From the sequence record LR756501.1: a DNA stretch of 64,000 bases. One strand, written 5' to 3'. Position numbers and translations under genes: made by a program. Below are positions 38,813 to 63,784 of the stretch, in pieces (position 1 is the stretch's first letter; each line of letters starts with the position of its first letter). The notes under the pieces are model-generated. The model ran no database searches. It saw only the letters and a program-made list of their open reading frames with translations, and was not told the DNA's origin.

Positions 38813-38815
38813 TAG

Positions 38816-38887
38816 TCACCCCAACGGAAGTCGAATCCGTATCTTCGCTGTGAGAGAGCGATTACCTAACCATTAGTAGATGGGGCG
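38816..38887 (-). tRNA. tRNA-Glu(CTC)
   Basis: Cloverleaf; anticodon arm tcgct-CTCTCAC-agcga. Confidence 0.88.
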
Positions 38888-38899
38888 TTATGTAATTTG

Positions 38900-38974
38900 T
38901 ACTCCCGACGAGACTCGAACTCGCAAATCTTCGCCGTGAAAGGGCGATGTCCTAACCAATTAGACGACAGGAGC
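38900..38974 (-). tRNA. tRNA-Glu(TTC)
   Basis: tcgcc-CTTTCAC-ggcga. Confidence 0.92.
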
Positions 38975-38990
38975 ATTTAGTTTCATTGTG

Positions 38991-39064
38991 TGACGCTATG
39001 GGGATTCGAACCCCAGATTTCAAGGATGAAAACCTTGCGTCCTGACCAACTAGACGATAGCGCC
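38991..39064 (-). tRNA. tRNA-Glu(TTC)
   Basis: caagg-TTTTCAT-ccttg. Confidence 0.9.
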
Positions 39065-39114
39065 AAAAATCTTAAAAACTTCTTAATATATATATTGAAA
39101 TAGAAATTGTTTAT

Positions 39115-39540
39115 TTAAACACTATCCTTGATATTCTTTTGTTCTACCGTCAATATTTGCCCTCTGAACCAAGGAGATAAGAAAATCTCTTTATCATCGT
39201 CATACATAACAGCTTCTTGTTCGAAGCCTTCACCAATGCCGTCAGACATTTGACCTTGAGTATAACTTTTCAGAACTTCTACTTCTTCGTCATTTAAGAG
39301 TTCTCTTGATTGGTACTCAATAATAGCGTAGAGAATACCAGCCTTGTAAGCGAACCTCATATATCCACCTTTAACACCTCTGTCTATAAGACATTGCTGA
39401 CCCGGATAATGTTTATCTCCAATTCTAAATGCTTCGTGGAAATATTCTGAAAAACAATCTTGGCAATCTATACCGTCTAATTTGCTTCTATCGTCGATGT
39501 TTGACGAACCAGCTGGTCCTTTTACTGTGATTTTATACAT
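39115..39540 (-). CDS. Hypothetical protein
   Basis: 141-aa ORF. Confidence 0.7.
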   Translation of the reverse strand: MYKITVKGPAGSSNIDDRSKLDGIDCQDCFSEYFHEAFRIGDKHYPGQQCLIDRGVKGGYMRFAYKAGILYAIIEYQSRELLNDEEVEVLKSYTQGQMSDGIGEGFEQEAVMYDDDKEIFLSPWFRGQILTVEQKNIKDSV

Positions 39541-39817
39541 TTTCTAGTTTGTTTTTTGCTTCATTTAAAACTTTTATAAGAACGTCTATTGATTTAGGAT
39601 TTGTAAAAGTCAATACTGCCTCAGGTTTAATATCTTCAAATTTACCTTGTGGTCCGTCTTCGTCATATTCACCAATTTCAAAAGGTTCAGTATTCTTAAA
39701 AAGAACAATCACTTTATTTTCATCCAAAGATTTGTTGTTCATTATAGATATATCACCTTTACCAAATTCTGCCAGTGTACAAATTATTCCATTAACTTTA
39801 GCGTTGAGATATACCAT
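39533..39817 (-). CDS. Hypothetical protein
   Basis: 94-aa ORF. Confidence 0.7.
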   Translation of the reverse strand: MVYLNAKVNGIICTLAEFGKGDISIMNNKSLDENKVIVLFKNTEPFEIGEYDEDGPQGKFEDIKPEAVLTFTNPKSIDVLIKVLNEAKNKLENV

Positions 39818-39818
39818 T

Positions 39819-40082
39819 TTACCTTTTCTTTTTAGTATCTTTCTTGGATTCTTTCTTGTCTTTCCTTACTTCTTTCTTTTCAGATTTAGCTTCTTTCTTA
39901 GCTTCTTTCTTAGCTTCGGCTTTGGCTTCAGTTGCAGTCTTTTCAGCCTTGAAGGCGTCTTTATAATCTTTCTTAGCTGCGTAAGCCCAACCTCTTTCAG
40001 TCATGGAATTGATTTTGATAATGTCTTCCATAGTCTTGTCGTTAACTTTAACGAATTCATCACCTTTTCTGAGAACCTTCAT
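39819..40082 (-). CDS. Small protein with K/E/A-rich repetitive tail
   Basis: AKAEAKKEAKKEAKSEKK. Confidence 0.7.
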   Translation of the reverse strand: MKVLRKGDEFVKVNDKTMEDIIKINSMTERGWAYAAKKDYKDAFKAEKTATEAKAEAKKEAKKEAKSEKKEVRKDKKESKKDTKKKR

Positions 40083-40117
40083 ACTTTTCGTGTTTTTTAA
40101 GATTAGTAAATAAAAAT

Positions 40118-40244
40118 ACAGTTCCAGTTAGATCAGTCACGCGTCTCTACTGCCTTAATTATTCCCTCTTTGTCCTCTTTCGAGATTAGGCTACAGACTC
40201 GATGCCTGTAGCACGCCCAACGCGTAGGGAAGCTGGTTTACTGC
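40118..40244 (-). ncRNA. Candidate structured ncRNA
   Basis: Closing pairing gcagt..ccag/ctgg..actgt; gctacag/ctgtagc hairpin; ctc-GAAA-gag. Confidence 0.45.
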
Positions 40245-40250
40245 ATTTAG

Positions 40251-40323
40251 TAGCAATGGAGGGACTTGAACCCCCAACCTCGAAGGTATAAGCTTCTTGC
40301 GCTAACCATTGCGCCACATTGCT
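40251..40323 (-). tRNA. tRNA-Ile(TAT)
   Basis: gaag-CTTATAC-cttc; normal D and T arms. Confidence 0.85.
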
Positions 40324-40329
40324 ATTTAG

Positions 40330-40401
40330 TTGCGGAGGAGGGGATCGAACCCTCGACCTTCAGATTATGAGCCTGACGAGCTACCGCTGCTCTACTCCAC
40401 G
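40330..40401 (-). tRNA. tRNA-Met(CAT), initiator-like (C1xA72)
   Basis: tcagg-CTCATAA-tctga; D arm gagcagcggtagctc. Confidence 0.88.
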
Positions 40402-40416
40402 ATATATTTTTCCTTG

Positions 40417-40489
40417 TAGCGGAAGAGGGATTCGAACCCCCGACCTACGGGTTATGAGCCCGGCGAGCTGGCCACTGCTCTATTCCGCA
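40417..40489 (-). tRNA. tRNA-fMet(CAT)
   Basis: GGG/CCC anticodon stem, 1:72 mismatch. Confidence 0.9.
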
Positions 40490-40503
40490 ATATTTCTTAT
40501 TAG

Positions 40504-40593
40504 TAGCGGGGATCCGATTCGGACGGATGATGACTTTTCACAAGCCATTTTGGGTTATGAGCCCAATGAGTTAGTCCACTACTCTACCCCGCG
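40504..40593 (-). tRNA. tRNA-Met(CAT), initiator-like with long variable arm
   Basis: ttggg-CTCATAA-cccaa; ~21-nt variable region; T loop TCCGAAT. Confidence 0.7.
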
Positions 40594-40705
40594 ATATATT
40601 TTAAATTGTGTTACCCAATCACTTTCGTGAATACAGCCTCTCTGTCTATAAGGAGTAACCACAATTTATTTTTTAGTCAAAATTTCAAAGTACAATTTCA
40701 CTATG

Positions 40706-40713
40706 CAAATATA
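40706..40713 (-). promoter_or_regulatory. Bacteroidota-type -7 element for the Met/Ile tRNA block
   Basis: TATATTTG; boxA-like GTACTTTGAA at 40684-40693. Confidence 0.6.
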
Positions 40714-40740
40714 CGATAATCATTTCAATTAAAAAAATTT

Positions 40741-41271
40741 TTAAAAATCTTTTATACACCTTAAAGAATATCCATATTTCTTATCACCATCAATCTTTCC
40801 TACACTCGACACTCCATCAAATAAGAAGTAAACCCAAGCTGTTGAAGCGTCTCTTTCTGTTGAACTCCAGTAATAAGAATGAGTATTCATATTTTCTCTT
40901 ATCTTCTTATCAGCGTTATACCTACCATTAAACAAAGAATTAAAACCATTCTTATCTTCTAACTTATCTGCAGCAAACTGTTTACCTATTGTGAGAAACA
41001 ATTTATTCCATTCACTTACTCTTGGAATATGCCAACCATCTGGACAGATACCTTTCATTTGTGAAGTATCTGGTTTTCTTTCATTTAGAATGGTTGTATA
41101 GTTATATAAAGTTGTATCATTATATTTCAAATTTTCACCCATCCAAGTTTGTTCTCCGATTTTGATCCACTTGTAAGATTTGTTATCCCTATTATCAATG
41201 AACGTTCCTTTTGTTTGTGCATTCAATAAGAATGTAGTTAAGACAAACAATAATGTAATTAACCTTTTCAT
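40741..41271 (-). CDS. FISUMP-domain exported protein
   Basis: Signal peptide; TWMGENLKY, ICPDGWHIP, GYSLRCIKD. Confidence 0.85.
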   Translation of the reverse strand: MKRLITLLFVLTTFLLNAQTKGTFIDNRDNKSYKWIKIGEQTWMGENLKYNDTTLYNYTTILNERKPDTSQMKGICPDGWHIPRVSEWNKLFLTIGKQFAADKLEDKNGFNSLFNGRYNADKKIRENMNTHSYYWSSTERDASTAWVYFLFDGVSSVGKIDGDKKYGYSLRCIKDF

Positions 41272-41292
41272 ATTATTCCGATTTTTAATGAG

Positions 41293-41364
41293 TTGCCCCT
41301 AATGGATTCGAACCATTACACCGAGCTCCAAAAACTCGTGTGCTAACCGTTACACTAAAGAGCA
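41293..41364 (-). tRNA. tRNA-Gln(TTG)
   Basis: cgagt-TTTTGGA-gctcg; U1-A72. Confidence 0.88.
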
Positions 41365-41506
41365 ATATATCTTTAACTATATATTGTTTTATTATCTTTA
41401 AGTTTAGAGATAATTTTTTTTAATCTTTCGTCCCTAGTTTTAATGTACTTCATAAGTCTTTCTTTTCCTTCTGTTGATATGCTCAAAACAGTAAATGTTA
41501 TACCTT

Positions 41507-41761
41507 TCATAATTTAAATTTTTTTAAGTCTAATAATCTTACGTTGCCTTCACCCATTGATAAAACTTTATCTAAAGCTTCTTTATCACCAGGTACCCAT
41601 CCAACGAAGTTATTTTTTAATTTTTCCTCTAACTCGACTAATTTATTTAAGTCGTGGTCACAAAGTTCAAAAAGATATTCTGTTTGTCCTCTGGACCTAT
41701 TAGTTGCTGATGTGAATTCTTCAAAGAACTCTTTACCGTAAGTATCTTGTAGTGTTTTCAT
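41507..41761 (-). CDS. Hypothetical protein
   Basis: 84-aa ORF. Confidence 0.65.
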   Translation of the reverse strand: MKTLQDTYGKEFFEEFTSATNRSRGQTEYLFELCDHDLNKLVELEEKLKNNFVGWVPGDKEALDKVLSMGEGNVRLLDLKKFKL

Positions 41762-41774
41762 AGTTTTATATCTT

Positions 41775-42464
41775 TCATCTTAATTTCATTATTTTAAATA
41801 TGTTACTAATAGTTCCTTTACTAACTTCAAAATGTTTTGATATTTCTTTTTGGTTCATTCCTCCATCATGTAATTCTTTAATTTTTATCTTATCCAATTT
41901 ATACTTGATTTCTTTTATGTTTTTTGATTTTTCTAAAATTTCTTCATAATTATTATCAAAAAATCCATCGTTGAAGTGTAAATCCATATGGCAATTTTTA
42001 CATAAAACAATACATTTCTGTAGTTCTTCTTCTAAATCTCTTTTTATATCACTAATCCCACTATCTAACAACAACCTGGATATGGTGATAATTTTATTTT
42101 TTGGTTCTATGTGATGAAAATCTAATGATCCGCTACATTTATCATACCCACATTTTTCACATTTTATATTATTAACATACTCTAATAATATTTTCTTATT
42201 TCTTGTTCTATAACCGTCAATATCGTAATGCAATTCGTGATGGCAATTATAACATAATAAAGAACATTTTTTTAATTCTTTCTCTATTATAGACCATCTC
42301 AGAATTTCTGATATATTCAAATCCTTATCTTCTCCCTCTTTATGATGAAAACATAATTTATAATAACTATTTTCACCACATTTCTCACATTTGCCCCCCA
42401 AATAATTTATAGCTTTAAATTTTTTAGAATATCTATCTATTTTTAACCATCTAATTTTATCCAT
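41775..42464 (-). CDS. HNH homing endonuclease, tandem HNH + HTH
   Basis: Two CxxC..FHH..LCxNCH units. Confidence 0.88.
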   Translation of the reverse strand: MDKIRWLKIDRYSKKFKAINYLGGKCEKCGENSYYKLCFHHKEGEDKDLNISEILRWSIIEKELKKCSLLCYNCHHELHYDIDGYRTRNKKILLEYVNNIKCEKCGYDKCSGSLDFHHIEPKNKIITISRLLLDSGISDIKRDLEEELQKCIVLCKNCHMDLHFNDGFFDNNYEEILEKSKNIKEIKYKLDKIKIKELHDGGMNQKEISKHFEVSKGTISNIFKIMKLR

Positions 42465-42523
42465 TAGTTGTAATCTTTTTTATTATATATATAAATAAAA
42501 AATACAACTTTTTCTCGTTTTTG

Positions 42524-42594
42524 TAGTTCCATCTGGTCATGATCCAGAACCTTTAGTTTCAGAAACTAACTTGCATCCGTTACAACATGGAACT
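42524..42594 (-). tRNA. tRNA-Gln(CTG), atypical T loop
   Basis: ttagt-TTCTGAA-actaa; T loop ATCATGA. Confidence 0.7.
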
Positions 42595-42599
42595 TTTTG

Positions 42600-42672
42600 C
42601 AGCCCCAACTGGATTCGAACCAATACCCGCTCCTTCAAAGGGAGAAATGCTCAACCATTACACTATGGGGCC
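42600..42672 (-). tRNA. tRNA-Gln(TTG)
   Basis: ctcc-CTTTGAA-ggag; G73. Confidence 0.88.
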
Positions 42673-42681
42673 ATGTTTTTG

Positions 42682-42753
42682 TACCGTGAGGAAATTTCGA
42701 AATTCCGGCCTAGCGAATATGAGTCGCTTGCTCTGCCTCTGAGCTACCACGGC
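42682..42753 (-). tRNA. tRNA with CAT anticodon, Ile2-like (or elongator Met)
   Basis: gagcaagcga-CTCATAT-tcgct resembles E. coli ileX. Confidence 0.8.
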
Positions 42754-49643: not shown

Positions 49644-50177
49644 TTATTCAGATAAAACATAAAGATCTTCATCAGGTGGCATCGGACAATCTGTAATCCA
49701 CTTAGTACTCCTTACGTCCCAATCCCCCATATCACCAAATTTTTTCACACTAAATACCTTGAGTCTCATATCTTTACCTGGGAATTTCATCTTATCGTAA
49801 CCGTTATCATAAAATAACATTCTATCAAGGGCTGCGTGTAAAGTGAGAGTAACACCATCTAAATGTTTCAAAACTTCTAAAAATTTCTTCTTTGGGTGTG
49901 GCCAAGCGGTATAAAGAAATATCTTTTTATTTCCGTTGCTTCTTAAAATATCTATAACTTGTATTAATCTATCTGGATATAACATTGGTTCACCCCCTGT
50001 TACAAAGACTTCTTCGTAACCCTTTATTTCTTCTACTTTGGCAAGTATGTGGTCGAAATCCATTATTTGATTGCAACAACCTTTACATTTTCTATTACAT
50101 TTAAAGCTCATTACAACTCTTGCAAATCGCTTTTGTGTTTTGTTCTCAAATAGGAATTCGTTAAATTTTGTTTTCAT
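49644..50177 (-). CDS. Radical SAM protein with CTS-like leader
   Basis: ATG at 50177 gives MKTKFNEFLFE; CNRKCKGC, VTGGEP. Confidence 0.85.
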   Translation of the reverse strand: MKTKFNEFLFENKTQKRFARVVMSFKCNRKCKGCCNQIMDFDHILAKVEEIKGYEEVFVTGGEPMLYPDRLIQVIDILRSNGNKKIFLYTAWPHPKKKFLEVLKHLDGVTLTLHAALDRMLFYDNGYDKMKFPGKDMRLKVFSVKKFGDMGDWDVRSTKWITDCPMPPDEDLYVLSE

Positions 50178-50203
50178 ATTACGTATATATAAAAATATAA
50201 AAA

Positions 50204-50240
50204 CAAAAAAGGGGTACTGATTTCTCAATACCCCTTTTTA
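50204..50240 (-). terminator. Terminator after RNase P RNA
   Basis: aaggggta(t/c)tga hairpin + U tract on -. Confidence 0.8.
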
Positions 50241-50251
50241 TGGTTCTTCAC

Positions 50252-50478
50252 GTAATTATCTCGTAGCCGCGATCCTGTTTCTAATCTTACATTTATCTAA
50301 GTCTTTCGACTTCCTTTCCAATGAAAGGTGCACCAACCCGTTCTCATAGACCAGCTCACCGTCTCGAACTGTTTGGCTTGCAACCTCAGTTGTGCAAACG
50401 ACTGATTAGGTCTCCAACTTTAAGCTGTGTTGTCGCGAACTTCCTCTAGTTTTCACCAGCGTAAGATCGAATAACTAC
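50252..50478 (-). ncRNA. rnpB: Minimal RNase P RNA (catalytic domain, reduced specificity domain)
   Basis: P1 gtagttattcg/cgagataattac; P2 atcttac/gtaagat; P3 with GAAA loop; GAGGAAGUUCGCGA pairs with UCGCGGCU (P4, bulged U); P5 caac/gttg then CAAGCCAAA; UAGAUAAAUG; ACAGGA. Confidence 0.85.
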
Positions 50479-50479
50479 C

Positions 50480-51508
50480 TTACTCCCCATACTTTAACAA
50501 GAACTCTGGATTAATAGCCTTGAAAGATACTCTTCCATTCACTAAATCAAAGTCATTCAAAATTGTAATGTCGAAGTCTTGCAACTCAACCAATGGTCTA
50601 ATAACAATACCTTCACGAGGTCCATTACCATTATCTACAACTGTCTTACCCTTTGATAATTCCACAAGTTCGTCAATGTTATTTGTAATAACAAAATCTG
50701 TGAAAAGAACTGGAACAGTTTCCAAACCAAGGCTTTCAATGAAGTTAATAAACTCATCGAAATTGTAGTACTTTTGATCGTCAATGTCGAACACATTGAA
50801 GAATCTAATATTCTGACCCTTGATCTTGTACTTATTGCTTTGGATTCCTTCGCCGTAAATTTCACCTTGTAAACTTACGTTCTTTCCAATACTTCTTAAC
50901 TTGTTCTCGATGTCGAACTTTCTTGTTAACTTCCACAAAGAATTGCCCTCTGTTTCGTTTAACTCTAAGTTCCTCGAACATACACCAAATTCACCGTTAT
51001 TTAAGTAAACTGTGTATGACGAACCGTCAACCTTTTCTGTGTAGTAACACTTTACACCGTTGTACTTATCAAGCAATGCTTGTAAAACTTGTACTCTGGT
51101 TTCATCACTCTTAACGATGAATGAAGGGAACTTACCCTTTGTATCACCACCCAAACAAGCAGGCTCGGCTGGTTCGTACTTGGTAACACCAAGAATTTCT
51201 GTTACATCCATTTCCTCTACAATTTCAATTCCTTCTGGAAGAATTGAAAGAGGGAAACAGATACCTTGACTGATAGCACCACGTAAACGAATTGTACGAA
51301 TACGGAATCCTACCTTTCTCAAGAATTCAAACTTTGGTGAATCTGGAAGTAAACTATCAATCTCACAGTAAACACAAAGATCACCAATATTAAATTCTCC
51401 CTTTTGCACGACTACGTGCCACCCTAAAACTCTTGCCAATTCTAATTGATCTGCGTTAGGGATTGATCTCAAGTCTGAGATCCTCTGAATTGAAGCTAAA
51501 TTTCTCAT
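50480..51508 (-). CDS. ATP-dependent RNA ligase (DRB0094-like)
   Basis: TEKVDGSS motif I, QGEIYG, FFNVF, REGIV, FKAIN; TATATTTG promoter at 51595-51602. Confidence 0.92.
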   Translation of the reverse strand: MRNLASIQRISDLRSIPNADQLELARVLGWHVVVQKGEFNIGDLCVYCEIDSLLPDSPKFEFLRKVGFRIRTIRLRGAISQGICFPLSILPEGIEIVEEMDVTEILGVTKYEPAEPACLGGDTKGKFPSFIVKSDETRVQVLQALLDKYNGVKCYYTEKVDGSSYTVYLNNGEFGVCSRNLELNETEGNSLWKLTRKFDIENKLRSIGKNVSLQGEIYGEGIQSNKYKIKGQNIRFFNVFDIDDQKYYNFDEFINFIESLGLETVPVLFTDFVITNNIDELVELSKGKTVVDNGNGPREGIVIRPLVELQDFDITILNDFDLVNGRVSFKAINPEFLLKYGE

Positions 51509-52019: not shown

Positions 52020-54047
52020 TTAAACCTCCATTCTTTCGTAATGCGAAAATGTTAAATTATTTATCGCTCTCCCCTGTGATAAAGTTCTTAAAGTTGTTAT
52101 AAACCCAAACTTCTCAGATAAAGGCGATTTAACCTTTAATATCACAGTTGAATCAGCTAAAGTATCTATTGATACTACCTGCGAACGACGCCTATTCAAC
52201 TCTCCTATTATATTACTTAAATATTCTTCTGGTGTCGCAACTTCTTCATCCATAATTGGTTCCAATAAAACTGGATTGCCTTTCATGTAAGCTGTTGGAA
52301 ATGAAAGTTTAACACAAGTTTCAAAAGCCAACGGACTAGAATCCACAACGTGAATTGCTCCGTCTATAATAGTTACTTTCAAACTTTCAATTTCATTACC
52401 AGCTAAAGGTCCGCTAACCATACAATCTTTGAAAGCTTTTTCAATAGTTGGCATATATTCTCTTGGAATATTTCCACCTTTGACTTCGTTAACAAAGATT
52501 AAACCTTTAGTATCATCAAGAACTGGCTCCATTCTATATTCGATTTCAGCAAACATACCTTTACCACCAGTTTGTCTTGATAATCTTTCTCTATGTGTTA
52601 CTGGTCTTGTAATAGTTTCTCTATAAGAAACTTTAGGTTGACCAGTATTACAATCAACGTTAAATTCAGTTCCTAATCTACTAACTATAACATCAAGATA
52701 GAGTTCACCCATTCCACTAACAACAGTTTGTCCGTTTTCATCAACCTTTACAGAGAAAGTGGGATCTTCTTCAGCCAATTTTTGTAAAGCAAATCCTAAT
52801 TTATCGTTATCTTTATTAGTTAAAGGTTCAATAGTAATTGATATAACCGGTTTAGCATTTGTTATACTTTCAAGTGTAAAGACGTTCTTATCTCCACATA
52901 AAGTATCACCTGTCCAAATATCTTTCATACCAACTATTGCACAAATATCACCAGCACTAGCCGATTTAATATCTGACTTTTTATCAGCCTGAATTGAGAA
53001 CAATCTTGATATTCTCTCAGCCTTTTTAGTTCTAGCGTTGTAAATAGTCTGTCCAACTTTAATAGTGCCAGAGTAAATTCTAATCATAGATAATTTACCA
53101 GCGTTCTTATCAGACATTATCTTAAACACAAGAGCAGATAAAACTTCATTTTCATTTGTTTTAATTTCTATATCTTCTTCGTCTTTCACTGCTGAAATTG
53201 TACTTCTATCCATTGGTGAAGGAAGAAAATTTACAACCGCGTCCAGTAAAGTTTGTACTCCTTTATTTTTCTTAGCTGTTCCACATAAAACTGGAACTAC
53301 TTTAAAATCAAGAGTTAACTTGCGAATTTTATTGAATATATCTTCTTTGGTTATTGTTTCTATTGCTTCAAAATATTGATGCATGAAATCACTATCGTAA
53401 TCACAAATAGTTTCAAGTATTTGTTCGTGATAGTATATTGCGTTAACCAAATATTCTTCTGGTATTTCAGATACTTCGTATTCTTCGCCTAACGTTTCAC
53501 TATTCCAAGTGATATATTTCATATTGATTAAATCAATAACTCCTTTGAAATTATCTTCACTACCAACAGGTAATTGTATAATAAGAGGTTTTGATTTTAA
53601 TCTATTTTCAATTTGTTCAACAACTTTAAAGAAATCAGCACCAGTTCTATCCATTTTATTAATGAAAGCGATTCTTGGAACTTTATATCTATTAGCTTGA
53701 CGCCAAACTGTTTCAGATTGTGGTTGTACACCGCCAACACCACAGAACACTACAACTGCACCATCTAATATTCTAAGTGAACGTTCTACTTCACCAGTAA
53801 AATCAATATGTCCAGGAGTATCTATAATTGTAATTTTATGATCGTTCCATTCGCAAGTAACTGCAGCAGACATAATTGTAATGCCTCTTTCTCTTTCTTG
53901 TGGCATGGAATCTGTGGTTGTATTACCGTCGTGGACTTCGCCCATTTTATGATTTTGTCCAGTATAATACAATACGCGCTCAGTCAACGTGGTTTTACCA
54001 GCGTCGATGTGTGCTATAATTCCTATATTTCTATTTTTTAAGTTCAT
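52020..54047 (-). CDS. fusA: Elongation factor G
   Basis: [35 protein letters not shown], domain V. Confidence 0.97.
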
Positions 54048-54792: not shown

Positions 54793-54868
54793 TGGCGGCC
54801 CATACGGGAGTTGAACCCGCTCCATACTCCGTGACAGGGAGACATCTTAACCGTTTGACCTATGAGCC
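54793..54868 (-). tRNA. tRNA-Asp(GTC), CCA encoded
   Basis: ctcc-CTGTCAC-ggag. Confidence 0.92.
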
Positions 54869-54873
54869 ATTTG

Positions 54874-54944
54874 CAGTACCGGCAGGATTCGAACCTACAA
54901 CCCCCGCCTCACTGGCGGTACACGTCCAATTGTGCTTCAATACT
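54874..54944 (-). tRNA. Atypical tRNA, possible GTG (His) anticodon in an aberrant loop
   Basis: Acceptor, D and T arms present; ccgcc-AGTGA-ggcgg, no U33. Confidence 0.5.
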
Positions 54945-55004
54945 AACACATTGATTTTATTAGCTCTTATTACAATGTGACTTATACTTTTGATATAAGA
55001 TTTG

Positions 55005-55078
55005 CAGTATGGACGGGATTCGAACCCGCGACCTTCGCCGTGACAGGGCGACATTCTAACCAACTGAACTACCAAACT
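55005..55078 (-). tRNA. tRNA-Asp(GTC)
   Basis: tcgcc-CTGTCAC-ggcga. Confidence 0.92.
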
Positions 55079-55083
55079 ATTTG

Positions 55084-55164
55084 TGGGAGTAGAAGGACTC
55101 GAACCTCCGAACTCTATGAGAACAGATTTACAGTCTGCTGCAATTGCCGCTATGCGATACTCCC
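55084..55164 (-). tRNA. tRNA-Tyr(GTA)
   Basis: gcaga-CTGTAAA-tctgt; long variable arm. Confidence 0.92.
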
Positions 55165-55169
55165 ATTTG

Positions 55170-55242
55170 TCGTGATGATTGGATTCGAACCAACGGTCGC
55201 CTGTTTATCCGACAGGTGCTCTAACCTCTGAGCTACACCACA
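55170..55242 (-). tRNA. tRNA-Ile(GAT), G33 variant
   Basis: cctgt-CGGATAA-acagg. Confidence 0.75.
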
Positions 55243-55331
55243 TCGCCCTGTTTTATTAAGCTTTTATGTGCACTTATTACTTTTTTATTCAGAACGTATT
55301 AACACCTTCCGATGTTAAATATTTTAAAGAA

Positions 55332-55391
55332 CAGAATACATTTGTTGTTTCAATTTACAGTTGAGTCGTTTTTGTTTGCTGTAAGTATTCT
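55332..55391 (-). ncRNA. UUACAGCAA stem element with a Tyr-type anticodon loop
   Basis: agaatac/gtattct stem; tcaa-CTGTAAA-ttga. Confidence 0.55.
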
Positions 55392-55402
55392 TTAATCTCT
55401 TG

Positions 55403-55476
55403 CGGGCCCAGTGAGAGTCGAACTCACATCTGATCGGTTAACAGCCGAGGGTTTTATCCATTAGTACTACAGGCCC
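55403..55476 (-). tRNA. tRNA-Asn(GTT)
   Basis: tcgg-CTGTTAA-ccga. Confidence 0.9.
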
Positions 55477-55491
55477 ATTATGCTTTAATCT

Positions 55492-55566
55492 TGGAGGACG
55501 AGGGGAATATCGAAATCCCGACCCATTGGTTAACAGCCAATCGCTCTGCCTCTGAGCTACTCATCC
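55492..55566 (-). tRNA. tRNA-Asn(GTT), CCA encoded
   Basis: attgg-CTGTTAA-ccaat. Confidence 0.9.
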
Positions 55567-55568
55567 AT

Positions 55569-55645
55569 TGGCTCCCCAGACAGGACTTGAACCTGTGACC
55601 CTTTGATTAACAGTCAAATGCTCTAACCAACTGAGCTACTGAGGA
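55569..55645 (-). tRNA. tRNA-Asn(GTT), CCA encoded
   Basis: tttga-CTGTTAA-tcaaa. Confidence 0.93.
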
Positions 55646-55653
55646 ATATTTTG

Positions 55654-55730
55654 CGGACCCAAAGGGATTCGAACCCTCCTGTTTGTACTGAGTGACAGTC
55701 AGACGGCCACGCCTAGCAGCCCCTGAGTCC
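55654..55730 (-). tRNA. tRNA-Asp(GTC)
   Basis: ctga-CTGTCAC-tcag. Confidence 0.85.
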
Positions 55731-55734
55731 ATTT

Positions 55735-55825
55735 AGTAGTATGTGTATTGTGTAGTTGCATCCGTTGATCAGGCTTTATTACGTAATTATCCTGTAGGAC
55801 TCGGCCGCACATAACCCACACTACT
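55735..55825 (-). ncRNA. Candidate structured ncRNA inside the tRNA array
   Basis: Closing stem agtagtgtg/cacatactact; internal cagg/cctg. Confidence 0.4.
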
Positions 55826-55830
55826 TTTTG

Positions 55831-55905
55831 TCGGCGAGGGAGGACTTGAACCTCCAACCTCGAAGTTATCAGCTTCGCCATCTAACCAATTGATAATACA
55901 CGCCG
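55831..55905 (-). tRNA. tRNA-Ile(GAT)
   Basis: cgaag-CTGATAA-cttcg. Confidence 0.9.
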
Positions 55906-55911
55906 TTGTTG

Positions 55912-55983
55912 AGGTAGTGGAGGGATTTGAACCCCCGTCTCTGGTTTTGCAGACCATCGCCTAAGCCACTCGGCCACACTACC
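55912..55983 (-). tRNA. tRNA-Cys(GCA)
   Basis: tggt-CTGCAAA-acca; U73. Confidence 0.92.
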
Positions 55984-56003
55984 CTATAATAATATTTCAA
56001 TAC

Positions 56004-56013
56004 TTCAAAGAAC
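56004..56013 (-). promoter_or_regulatory. boxA-like element
   Basis: GTTCTTTGAAgTATTGAAATA. Confidence 0.65.
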
Positions 56014-56400
56014 TAATTTATATTCATCATATTTCTTACTAAGAGTAAGTGTACTTTTAGCGTTTATTTCACAACTAGGTATCGAATAAGCATCACCTAT
56101 ATCTGTTAAAATAAACAAAATATCACAATTTCTATTATCAAAGTAATGAATATTGTGATTACTTTTATTTCCACCACACGTTTTAATATTTACATTGTAA
56201 GAACCATATTTAGTCTTATATTGAGTTGTTTTAACTTGAACTTTTTTTAATTCACCATCATCTAATATCAAATCATATTTTTGATTCTCACTTATCGGTA
56301 AAGATACTGTAAATCCCATTTTTTGATATTCATATAGTGCTTTACATAATCCTATATTACCTTGGTCAGTTGTTGTTAAACAGTTTTTAAATAATTCCAT
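56005..56400 (-). CDS. Free-standing PD-(D/E)XK endonuclease (PDDEXK_5-like)
   Basis: GNIG..A, YDLILDD, KVQVKT. Confidence 0.82.
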   Translation of the reverse strand: MELFKNCLTTTDQGNIGLCKALYEYQKMGFTVSLPISENQKYDLILDDGELKKVQVKTTQYKTKYGSYNVNIKTCGGNKSNHNIHYFDNRNCDILFILTDIGDAYSIPSCEINAKSTLTLSKKYDEYKLVL

Positions 56401-56453
56401 TTTCGTTTTTATATTTATATATAAAAAACGGTATGGCCTACCTTTGTAAATAT

Positions 56454-56463
56454 TTCAAAGAAC
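56454..56463 (-). promoter_or_regulatory. boxA-like element
   Basis: GTTCTTTGAAATATT. Confidence 0.6.
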
Positions 56464-56473
56464 TCTTTTTTTG

Positions 56474-56541
56474 TGCCGCCGGAAGGAATTGAACCTTCTC
56501 GCTAAGCTTTTACAGAGCTGTCGTCTCCCTGGATCGTCGGC
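56474..56541 (-). tRNA. Atypical short tRNA with GTA (Tyr) anticodon, no long variable arm, reduced D arm
   Basis: agct-CTGTAAA-agct; gaagg-TTCAATT-ccttc; 68 nt. Confidence 0.55.
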
Positions 56542-56596
56542 TTATAAATTTCTACGCACTATTAGATGCTGCCTATGAAATTTTAACAGTCTGCTG

Positions 56597-56671
56597 TGGG
56601 TATGGCAGGACTTGAACCTACAACCTTGTCGGTATCAGCGACATGCTCTCAACCAATTGAGCTACACACCC
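56597..56671 (-). tRNA. tRNA-Ile(GAT)
   Basis: tgtcg-CTGATAC-cgaca. Confidence 0.92.
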
Positions 56672-63185: not shown

Positions 63186-63240
63186 AATAAGTTTTTATCT
63201 TTATATATAAAAATTATATGGTCCCATTGTTTCATATTTG

Positions 63241-63314
63241 TGGCCCTACCCAGACTCGAACTGGGACATCAAGTTTCTAAGACTTGCGCGACTACGCTAT
63301 TACGCCATAGAGCC
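63241..63314 (-). tRNA. tRNA with TAG (Leu) anticodon, short variable loop
   Basis: caagt-CTTAGAA-acttg; 4-5-nt variable loop. Confidence 0.8.
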
Positions 63315-63319
63315 ATTTG

Positions 63320-63392
63320 TAACCCTGCACGGAGTCGAACCGAGATATTCTGGTTTTAAGCCAGACGCCACTACCAATTAGGCTACAGAGTC
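63320..63392 (-). tRNA. tRNA with TAA (Leu) anticodon, short variable loop
   Basis: tctgg-CTTAAAA-ccaga; 4-5-nt variable loop. Confidence 0.8.
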
Positions 63393-63402
63393 ATTTTTAT
63401 TG

Positions 63403-63486
63403 TACCGAGGATGGGAGTCGAACCCACACGTCCGTAAGGACACTGGTTTTTGAGACCAGCGCGTCTACCAGTTCCGCCACCTCGGC
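63403..63486 (-). tRNA. tRNA-Leu(CAA)
   Basis: ctggt-CTCAAAA-accag; long variable arm. Confidence 0.93.
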
Positions 63487-63489
63487 ATG

Positions 63490-63610
63490 TGATGAAGTAA
63501 TAGGATTCGAACCTATATGACTGATTTCTCAGCGGTTAGCCCTTGTACTTCGGTCTTTCCCATTTTCACCCTAAACGGGTGATACGTTTCCATTTTAGTC
63601 CTACTTCATC
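63490..63610 (-). ncRNA. tRNA-like element, up to 9-bp acceptor, expanded body
   Basis: gatgaagta/tacttcatc; atagg-TTCGAAT-cctat; tcaccc/gggtga; ctga-GAAA-tcag. Confidence 0.55.
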
Positions 63611-63612
63611 TG

Positions 63613-63696
63613 TGCGGTTAAGGGGACTCGAACCCCTACGTCCTTGCGGACACCAGCCCCTCAAGCTGGCGCGTCTACCAATTCCGCCATAACCGC
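63613..63696 (-). tRNA. tRNA-Leu(GAG)
   Basis: ccagc-TTGAGGG-gctgg. Confidence 0.93.
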
Positions 63697-63702
63697 GTTG
63701 TG

Positions 63703-63784
63703 TGCCCTTGACAGGACTCGAACCTGCACATCCGAAGACACTAGATCCTAAGTCTAGCGCGTCTACCAATTCCGCCACAAGGGC
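63703..63784 (-). tRNA. tRNA-Leu(TAG)
   Basis: ctaga-CTTAGGA-tctag. Confidence 0.93.

Follow-up and report, generated by a model that had tools for sequence, protein, structure and literature searches.

The region surrounding the RNA

The window, a stretch of 64,000 nucleotides, lies in LR756501.1 (and LR756503.1), the 735,411-bp genome of an uncultured phage that was the largest genome in Al-Shayeb et al. 2020 (PMC7162821), where it was placed in the Mahaphage clade with a predicted Bacteroidetes host and where the text does not mention RNase P. Window positions 50200–50490 are 100% identical to positions 181260–181550 of the record. The window is rich in genes for translation, including 27 tRNA genes, all on the minus strand, a gene for EF-G, and a gene for an ATP-dependent RNA ligase of the DRB0094 family. 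Between the stop codon of the ligase (50482–50480) and an intrinsic terminator is a minus-strand RNA of 227 nt with the architecture of an RNase P RNA (Table 1).

The initial annotation had placed a minimal RNase P RNA at 50252–50478, with helices P1 to P5, a bulged U in P4, a GGU in L15 and two conserved words, UAGAUAAAUG and ACAG. All of these elements are present on the minus strand, and the outer pair of P1 gives exactly these ends. The P5 strands are separated by 44 nt (approximately 45 nt was given previously). Elements not listed previously were also found: a P6 pseudoknot, P15, P16 and P17, an extra hairpin, a P18-like hairpin with a GAAA loop, and the terminator.

Table 1. Features of the RNA and its surroundings. 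Coordinates are those of the window; position n of the RNA equals window position 50480-n.
Feature	Window coordinates	Strand	RNA positions	Observations
Whole RNA	50252–50478	-		227 nt from the outer pair of P1 to its partner; 263 bits with model R1 on 50247–50491
P1	50470–50478 with 50252–50260	-	2–10 with 220–228	all 9 pairs have double changes in the family
P2	50461–50468 with 50283–50290	-	12–19 with 190–197	covaries; closing C-G pair near invariant
P3 hairpin	50446–50459	-	21–25 with 30–34	5 bp, GAAA loop; length varies in relatives
CR-I: J3/4 (AGGA) and P4 5' strand	50434–50446	-	P4: 39–41 and 43–46	bulged U42 at 50438; GAGGAAG.UC at least 97% conserved; 11 of 14 positions identical to E. 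coli 61–74
P4 3' strand	50265–50271	-	209–215	pseudoknot with 50434–50441
P5	50429–50432 with 50381–50384	-	48–51 with 96–99	98.6% paired; 3 of 4 pairs have double changes
P6 pseudoknot	50423–50427 with 50352–50356	-	53–57 with 124–128	3' strand in the P17 loop
P7-like stub	50388–50419	-	61–65 with 88–92; 68–70 with 78–80	32 nt; stem capped by a small hairpin, with a GGAG / GUU..AC internal loop
J5/15	50378–50380	-		CAA, counterpart of E. coli C247-A248-A249; at least 97% conserved
P15-P16-P17 arm with L15 internal loop	50332–50377	-	GGU: 142–144	GGU at 50336–50338, at least 97% conserved; helices covary; 13 of 17 and 16 of 23 positions identical to the E. coli L15 flanks
Extra hairpin between P15 and P18	50313–50328	-	152–167	only in the window's subgroup; absent from the shortest members
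P18-like hairpin	50300–50311	-	169–180	GAAA loop; only in some members
J18/2 (CR-IV)	50290–50299	-	181–190	UAGAUAAAUG, at least 97% conserved; last G opens the P2 3' strand; E. coli has UAGAUGAAUG at the same place
J2/4 (CR-V)	50272–50282	-	ACAG: 202–205	ACAG at 50275–50278; A202, C203, A204, G205 and A207 at least 97% conserved
Intrinsic terminator	50206–50239	-		13 nt after P1
ATP-dependent RNA ligase gene	50480–51508	-		upstream; 50483–51508 without the stop codon, which ends 1 nt before the RNA; TIGR02306, 184.8 bits (cut-off 151)
EF-G gene	52020–54047			TIGR00484, 865 bits
tRNA array	54793–56671	-		nearest same-strand array, 11 genes
Further tRNA arrays	38815–42753; 63240–63784	-

Analysis of the single sequence

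Standard models do not detect this RNA. A search of the window with Rfam at gathering thresholds found only tRNAs, and a search of 50000–50700 at E up to 10 found no RNase P family – not even the archaeal type T model RF02357 – and only noise such as mir-268 and CsrB. RF00010 and RF00011 found nothing at the site when the whole 735-kb record was searched. Thermodynamic folding of the single sequence gave z = -1.15 for the RNA strand and -2.02 for the other strand, which is uninformative, and minimum free energy folding cannot represent the pseudoknots. The only open reading frame in the region encodes 42 amino acids on the opposite strand (50321–50449), and the pattern of conservation is that of paired RNA rather than of a coding sequence. 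The case for the RNA therefore rests on comparison with related sequences.

A family of related RNAs in phages

A scan of viral contigs for the pattern of the 3' conserved words returned 67 stretches. In 46 of these, a GGAAG(U/C)UC word lies only 114–272 nt upstream of UAGAU, and the bases following it are complementary to the bases before GGCU, so that covariation of P4 is visible directly (CGCG/CGCG, CAGG/CCUG, CAUC/GAUG, CACG/CGUG and others). A P1 helix of different sequence closes almost every one, giving total lengths of 197–350 nt. The window RNA was aligned with its six closest relatives, and a covariance model, R1, was built from these seven sequences without P4 and P6. R1 found 43 matches on the viral loci and 75 matches in 80 metagenome loci. 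It also found one match each in the huge phages LR745206, LR756502 and LR756511 and in the cultured Stenotrophomonas phage vB_SmaS-DLP_6. The match in DLP_6 (KU682439.2, 105761–106023, 110.6 bits) is in an unannotated gap in a tRNA array, 3 nt before tRNA-Arg. In total, more than 120 relatives of about 195–350 nt were found, and there is exactly one copy in each of the five phage genomes, including that of the window. Nucleotide searches of GenBank phages had little reach, finding only the window itself, three huge phages and a 42-nt piece of DLP_6; a search with L031, a full-size relative from the viral contigs, found nothing.

The same pattern was searched in the genomes of 185,579 species and returned 46 stretches, of which 41 were chance matches. 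The other five are members of the family, but all five are on contigs of MAGs inside same-strand, phage-like tRNA arrays, and are most likely misbinned phage DNA. None is in the chromosome of an isolate.

Covariation

Compensatory changes occur in every helix. Nested helices were paired in 93.1% of cells in the viral set (43 sequences) and in 93.3% in the metagenome set (74 sequences), compared with 60.5% and 59.0% when the 3' letters were shuffled and 35–45% and 35–42% when the 3' partners were slid. Changes on both sides were found in 51 of 56 pairs in the viral set and 50 of 56 in the metagenome set. The two inner A-U pairs initially assigned to P15 never covary, and are better read as part of the L15 loop, as in E. 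coli. These alignments were fitted to the model, which favours the nested helices, but P4 and P6 were not in the model and so give an unbiased test. P4 was 97.0% paired in 38 viral-contig sequences and 99.8% paired in 74 metagenomic sequences, with 36 and 88 double-change cells, against 17–44% when slid. P6 was 90.6% and 88.0% paired, with 46 and 104 double-change cells; for the two pseudoknots together, sliding the partners reduced pairing to 17–57%. The bulged position in P4 is U in all 74 metagenomic sequences.

One possibility is that the RNA is a decaying remnant of a captured host rnpB gene with no function: it has lost about 150 nt relative to full-size type A RNAs, and full-size phage-borne copies, such as L031, exist. 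This is very unlikely, because more than 120 diverged copies retain every helix through compensatory changes and retain the core nucleotides. In addition, the RNA is single-copy in five genomes, has its own terminator, and is found in RNA libraries, although DNA carry-over into these cannot be excluded.

Relationship to bacterial type A RNase P RNA

Positions conserved in at least 97% of the 35 best-aligned family members are G34-G40, U42, C43, the first P5 pair, C100-A101-A102, A108, A110, G142-G143-U144, U181-U185, A188-G190, A202-G205, A207 and G212-A216. Set against E. coli rnpB (M1 RNA), these are CR-I with U69, J5/15 with A248, the L15 G292-G293-U294, J18/2 and J2/4. The type A core words CR-I (GAGGAA.G.C), CR-IV (AGAU.AAUG) and CR-V (ACAGAA...GGCU.A) are in the right structural places. 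Four core segments are 64–79% identical to E. coli (11 of 14, 16 of 23, 13 of 17 and 23 of 36 positions), in the right order and structural context. The family-wide P4 word is GGAAGYUC, which reads in register with E. coli GGAAAGUC, and the two differing P4 pairs are changed on both strands. The topology of the P4 and P6 pseudoknots is identical to that of type A, with the bulged U three pairs from the J3/4 end of P4.

Rfam models do recognise relatives of the window RNA. L031 (348 nt, with the same P4 word, in a tRNA array) scores 124.4 bits on RF00010, above the threshold of 100 bits. Two further viral loci, L048 and L017, score 66.7 and 63.3 bits, and DLP_6 scores 54.7 bits, all below threshold but significant, with E-values of 4e-18 to 5e-14. 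Four of the miniature RNAs match the archaeal model RF00373 with E-values of 1e-8 to 1e-3. R1 scores all of these (38.7–122 bits), and the window is therefore tied to canonical RNase P through a graded series. R1 does not score E. coli rnpB itself, so this link is transitive, supplemented by hand alignment. An unrelated structured RNA resembling RNase P by chance or convergence would account for the failure of the Rfam models on the window, but is very unlikely given the graded series, the segment identities and the pseudoknot topology.

What is missing from the window RNA is nearly all of the specificity domain. P8–P14 are absent, and with them CR-II and CR-III and the T-loop-reading modules; the distance between the P5 strands is about 165 nt in E. 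coli. Between the P6 5' strand and the P5 3' strand there is a single hairpin, whose assignment to P7 is inferred from its position relative to E. coli. The RNA is thus not purely a catalytic domain, as the initial annotation had proposed, but the reading of a phage-encoded RNase P RNA reduced to little more than that domain is supported. P3 has only 5 bp. The shortest members of the family also lack P18, and their L15/P15 strand abuts UAGAU directly.

Comparison with other reduced RNase P RNAs

RNase P is one of the two universal ribozymes, and its two-domain build in bacteria has been treated as fixed. Until now the only natural forms without a specificity domain were the type T RNAs of the Thermoproteaceae (Pyrobaculum and relatives; RF02357; PMC3579882, PMC13462272). 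Like the phage RNA, these are about 200 nt and retain the catalytic domain, but they are archaeal, occur in cellular genomes, and work with the archaeal proteins Pop5, Rpp30 and L7Ae. The phage RNA has a bacterial type A build (P6, P15–P17, L15 GGU), making this an independent, convergent reduction.

Engineered catalytic-domain-only bacterial RNAs, such as the Eco CP RPR (PMC5839562; reviewed in PMC11143913), have the same parts list. They cleave pre-tRNA and model hairpins in vitro with and without the protein; P6-type pairing matters for this activity and P18 is dispensable. This matches the phage family, in which P6 is always kept and P18 is optional. However, the constructs are laboratory deletions with reduced efficiency and weaker pre-tRNA binding, while the phage RNAs are natural, are under selection, and keep a conserved P7-like stub that the constructs lack. 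The reduced RNAs of CPR bacteria and Mycoplasma fermentans (PMC8172020) also fall below Rfam thresholds because helices are missing (P12, P13, P14, P18), and some also lack the GGU motif. These still have a specificity domain (P7–P11) and are the only RNase P RNA of the cell, whereas the phage family goes much further and keeps the GGU. No description of a phage-encoded RNase P RNA was found in the literature searched, including a 2024 RNase P review, though coverage was incomplete and this is not proof that none exists.

Genomic context and expression

In 30 of 47 loci there are tRNA genes within 2 kb, and all 192 of these tRNAs are on the same strand as the RNA. In several loci the RNA ends 1–13 nt before a tRNA, so that its 3' end would be made by RNase P cleavage. 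In the window the nearest tRNA is 4.3 kb away. tmRNA genes are beside the RNA in three viral loci (L073, L066 and L037). Two sister huge phages, LR756502 and LR745206, encode RnpA (51.6 and 43.8 bits against a cut-off of 38.35) with the RNR motif. No rnpA was detected in LR756511 or DLP_6, nor in the window phage, where a search with the phage RnpA as query also found no divergent copy.

Two metatranscriptome runs contain short contigs, of 189 and 151 nt, that cover only the RNA gene. Two others contain the ligase gene of a relative and diverge exactly at 50480. This suggests a discrete stable RNA but does not prove one; the contigs covering the RNA gene come from relatives at about 94% identity and DNA carry-over cannot be excluded. 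Elsewhere, 11 viral loci have a related ligase, but none has the RNA within 3 kb, and the ligase linkage is specific to the window.

Probable function

Taken with the precedent of the engineered catalytic domains, the RNA is most likely an active RNase P RNA of bacterial type A descent that cuts the 5' leaders off the transcripts of the phage's own tRNA arrays, although no cleavage assay exists. The likely mechanism follows that of the bacterial enzyme: the acceptor stem docks on P4 and J5/15, the 3' end docks on L15, and metal-dependent hydrolysis occurs at the site built by P4 and its bulged U. Because the window phage has no detectable rnpA of its own, the RNA probably works as a ribonucleoprotein with the RnpA of the host.

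The absence of rnpA from the window phage could also suggest a decoy, a non-catalytic RNA that titrates host RnpA or competes for pre-tRNA and so shuts down host tRNA maturation. The regions that probably contact RnpA in bacterial RNase P (P2–P4, J18/2 and J2/4) are the best conserved parts. This explanation is unlikely, however – nucleotides needed for chemistry and substrate docking rather than protein binding are invariant (the bulged U, J5/15 A, L15 GGU and the P6 pseudoknot), the gene is inside the phage's own tRNA arrays, which need processing, and two relatives add their own RnpA, which makes no sense for a sponge. It is also possible, though doubtful, that the RNA is active but acts mainly on other substrates, such as phage mRNAs, tmRNA or its own precursor, with loss of the specificity domain reflecting a change of substrate. 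In E. coli the specificity domain is not needed for non-tRNA substrates such as 4.5S RNA (PMC11143913), tmRNA genes are beside the RNA in three loci, and in the window the RNA follows a ligase gene rather than a tRNA. The same-strand linkage to tRNAs (192 of 192), the RNAs that directly abut a tRNA 5' end, and the retention of the CCA-reading L15 argue against it.

More broadly, it is somewhat more likely than not that tailed phages with tRNA arrays carry their own, previously unrecognised architectural class of RNase P RNA, a type A catalytic domain plus a small stub of about 195–260 nt in all, that is widespread in freshwater, sediment, soil, sludge and marine metagenomes, is active in vivo, and in some huge phages is paired with a phage-encoded RnpA to give a complete viral RNase P. 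This would show that the specificity domain is dispensable in nature for a bacterial-type enzyme, and would mean that phages take over tRNA 5' maturation, a new layer in how large phages take over translation beside their tRNAs, synthetases, EF-G, tmRNA and RNA ligase. The family is also an evolutionary experiment on what the catalytic domain needs, and a source of small ribozymes suited to structural and engineering work. Rfam thresholds miss both the window RNA and the copy in DLP_6, an annotation gap.

The initial annotation had further suggested that relaxed recognition of the tRNA elbow would suit phage tRNAs with odd T loops at three sites. This link is weak. Odd T loops are real for tRNA-Gln(CUG) at 42523–42594 (AUCAUGA) and for a 91-nt tRNA-Met at 40503–40593, which has a long extra arm, but nothing is called at the third site, 42941. 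The other 25 tRNAs have ordinary T loops, and the family also accompanies ordinary tRNA arrays elsewhere, so relaxed elbow reading is a consequence of the architecture and is not shown to be its purpose. Only 3 of the 27 tRNA genes encode CCA, although the GGU that reads CCA is invariant. The leaders of the tRNAs mostly end in AAAU or AUAU, with U at position -1.

Phage-encoded RnpA and relatives of the mini RNase P RNA

Two sister huge phages, LR756502.1 and LR745206.1, encode RnpA, the RNase P protein, with matches to TIGR00188 above the cut-off of 38.35 bits. Both proteins carry the RNR motif KKFKRAVDRNR.KRLMRE, and together with the mini RNA of these phages this would make a complete phage-encoded RNase P, while no rnpA was detected in the window phage. 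A family member was also found in the cultured Stenotrophomonas phage vB_SmaS-DLP_6, where it is unannotated and lies 3 nt upstream of tRNA-Arg-CCG. It was found with the covariance model R1, and its RF00010 score is below threshold. This phage provides a system that can be tested at the bench.

One metagenome contig (L214) holds two tandem copies of the mini RNase P RNA. Two further family members, inside bacterial-type tRNA arrays, are on contigs assigned to MAGs – one (L127, PLXT01000115.1, 170,662 bp) was binned as Methanobacterium sp., an archaeal MAG, and the other (L089) as Candidatus Roizmanbacteria, a CPR MAG. These are probably phage contigs that were placed in the wrong bins.

Coordinates of rnpA genes, mini RNase P RNAs and neighboring features in the window phage and in related loci (L numbers are the loci or contigs examined)
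Feature	Location	Strand	Score
rnpA, LR756502.1	525189-525479 (L134:1124-1492)		TIGR00188, 51.6 bits
rnpA, LR745206.1	76444-76749 (L135:1109-1456)		TIGR00188, 43.8 bits
Mini RNase P RNA family member, phage vB_SmaS-DLP_6	KU682439.2 105761-106023 (L084:2296-2558)		R1, 110.6 bits; RF00010, 54.7 bits
Tandem mini RNase P RNA, first copy	L214:1696-1898	minus	145.3 bits
Tandem mini RNase P RNA, second copy	L214:1905-2124	minus	56.9 bits
tRNA genes (27)	window 38815-63784	minus	
tRNA-Met(CAU), 91 nt	window 40503-40593	minus	
tRNA-Gln(CUG)	window 42523-42594	minus	not called by Rfam at threshold
EF-G, full-length	window 52020-54047	minus	TIGR00484, 865 bits
RNA ligase, DRB0094 family	window 50483-51508	minus	
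Small ORF, weak radical-SAM matches	window 49647-50177	minus	about 20-23 bits
tmRNA genes, three viral contigs	L073:1678-1957, L066:1020-1390, L037:1261-1644		97-135 bits
YrlA, sub-threshold match	L033:1299-1413	minus	37.7 bits, E = 1e-4

tRNA genes and other genes near the mini RNase P RNA

Of the 27 tRNA genes in the window, only 3 (at 54793, 55492 and 55569) encode the 3'-CCA. Most of the leaders end in AAAU or AUAU, and some of the spacers are only 2-5 nt. Two of the tRNA genes are unusual: the tRNA-Met(CAU) has a long extra arm and the T loop UCCGAAU, and the tRNA-Gln(CUG), which is not called by Rfam at threshold, has the T loop AUCAUGA. The mini RNA itself is flanked by three phage genes, those for EF-G and the RNA ligase and the small ORF; the radical-SAM matches of the last are weak and far below the cut-offs.

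In three viral contigs (L073, L066 and L037), a tmRNA gene lies within 1-2.5 kb of the mini RNase P RNA – tmRNA precursors are also RNase P substrates. In another locus (L033), the sub-threshold match to YrlA, a Y-RNA-like family, lies inside a phage tRNA array next to a mini RNase P RNA.
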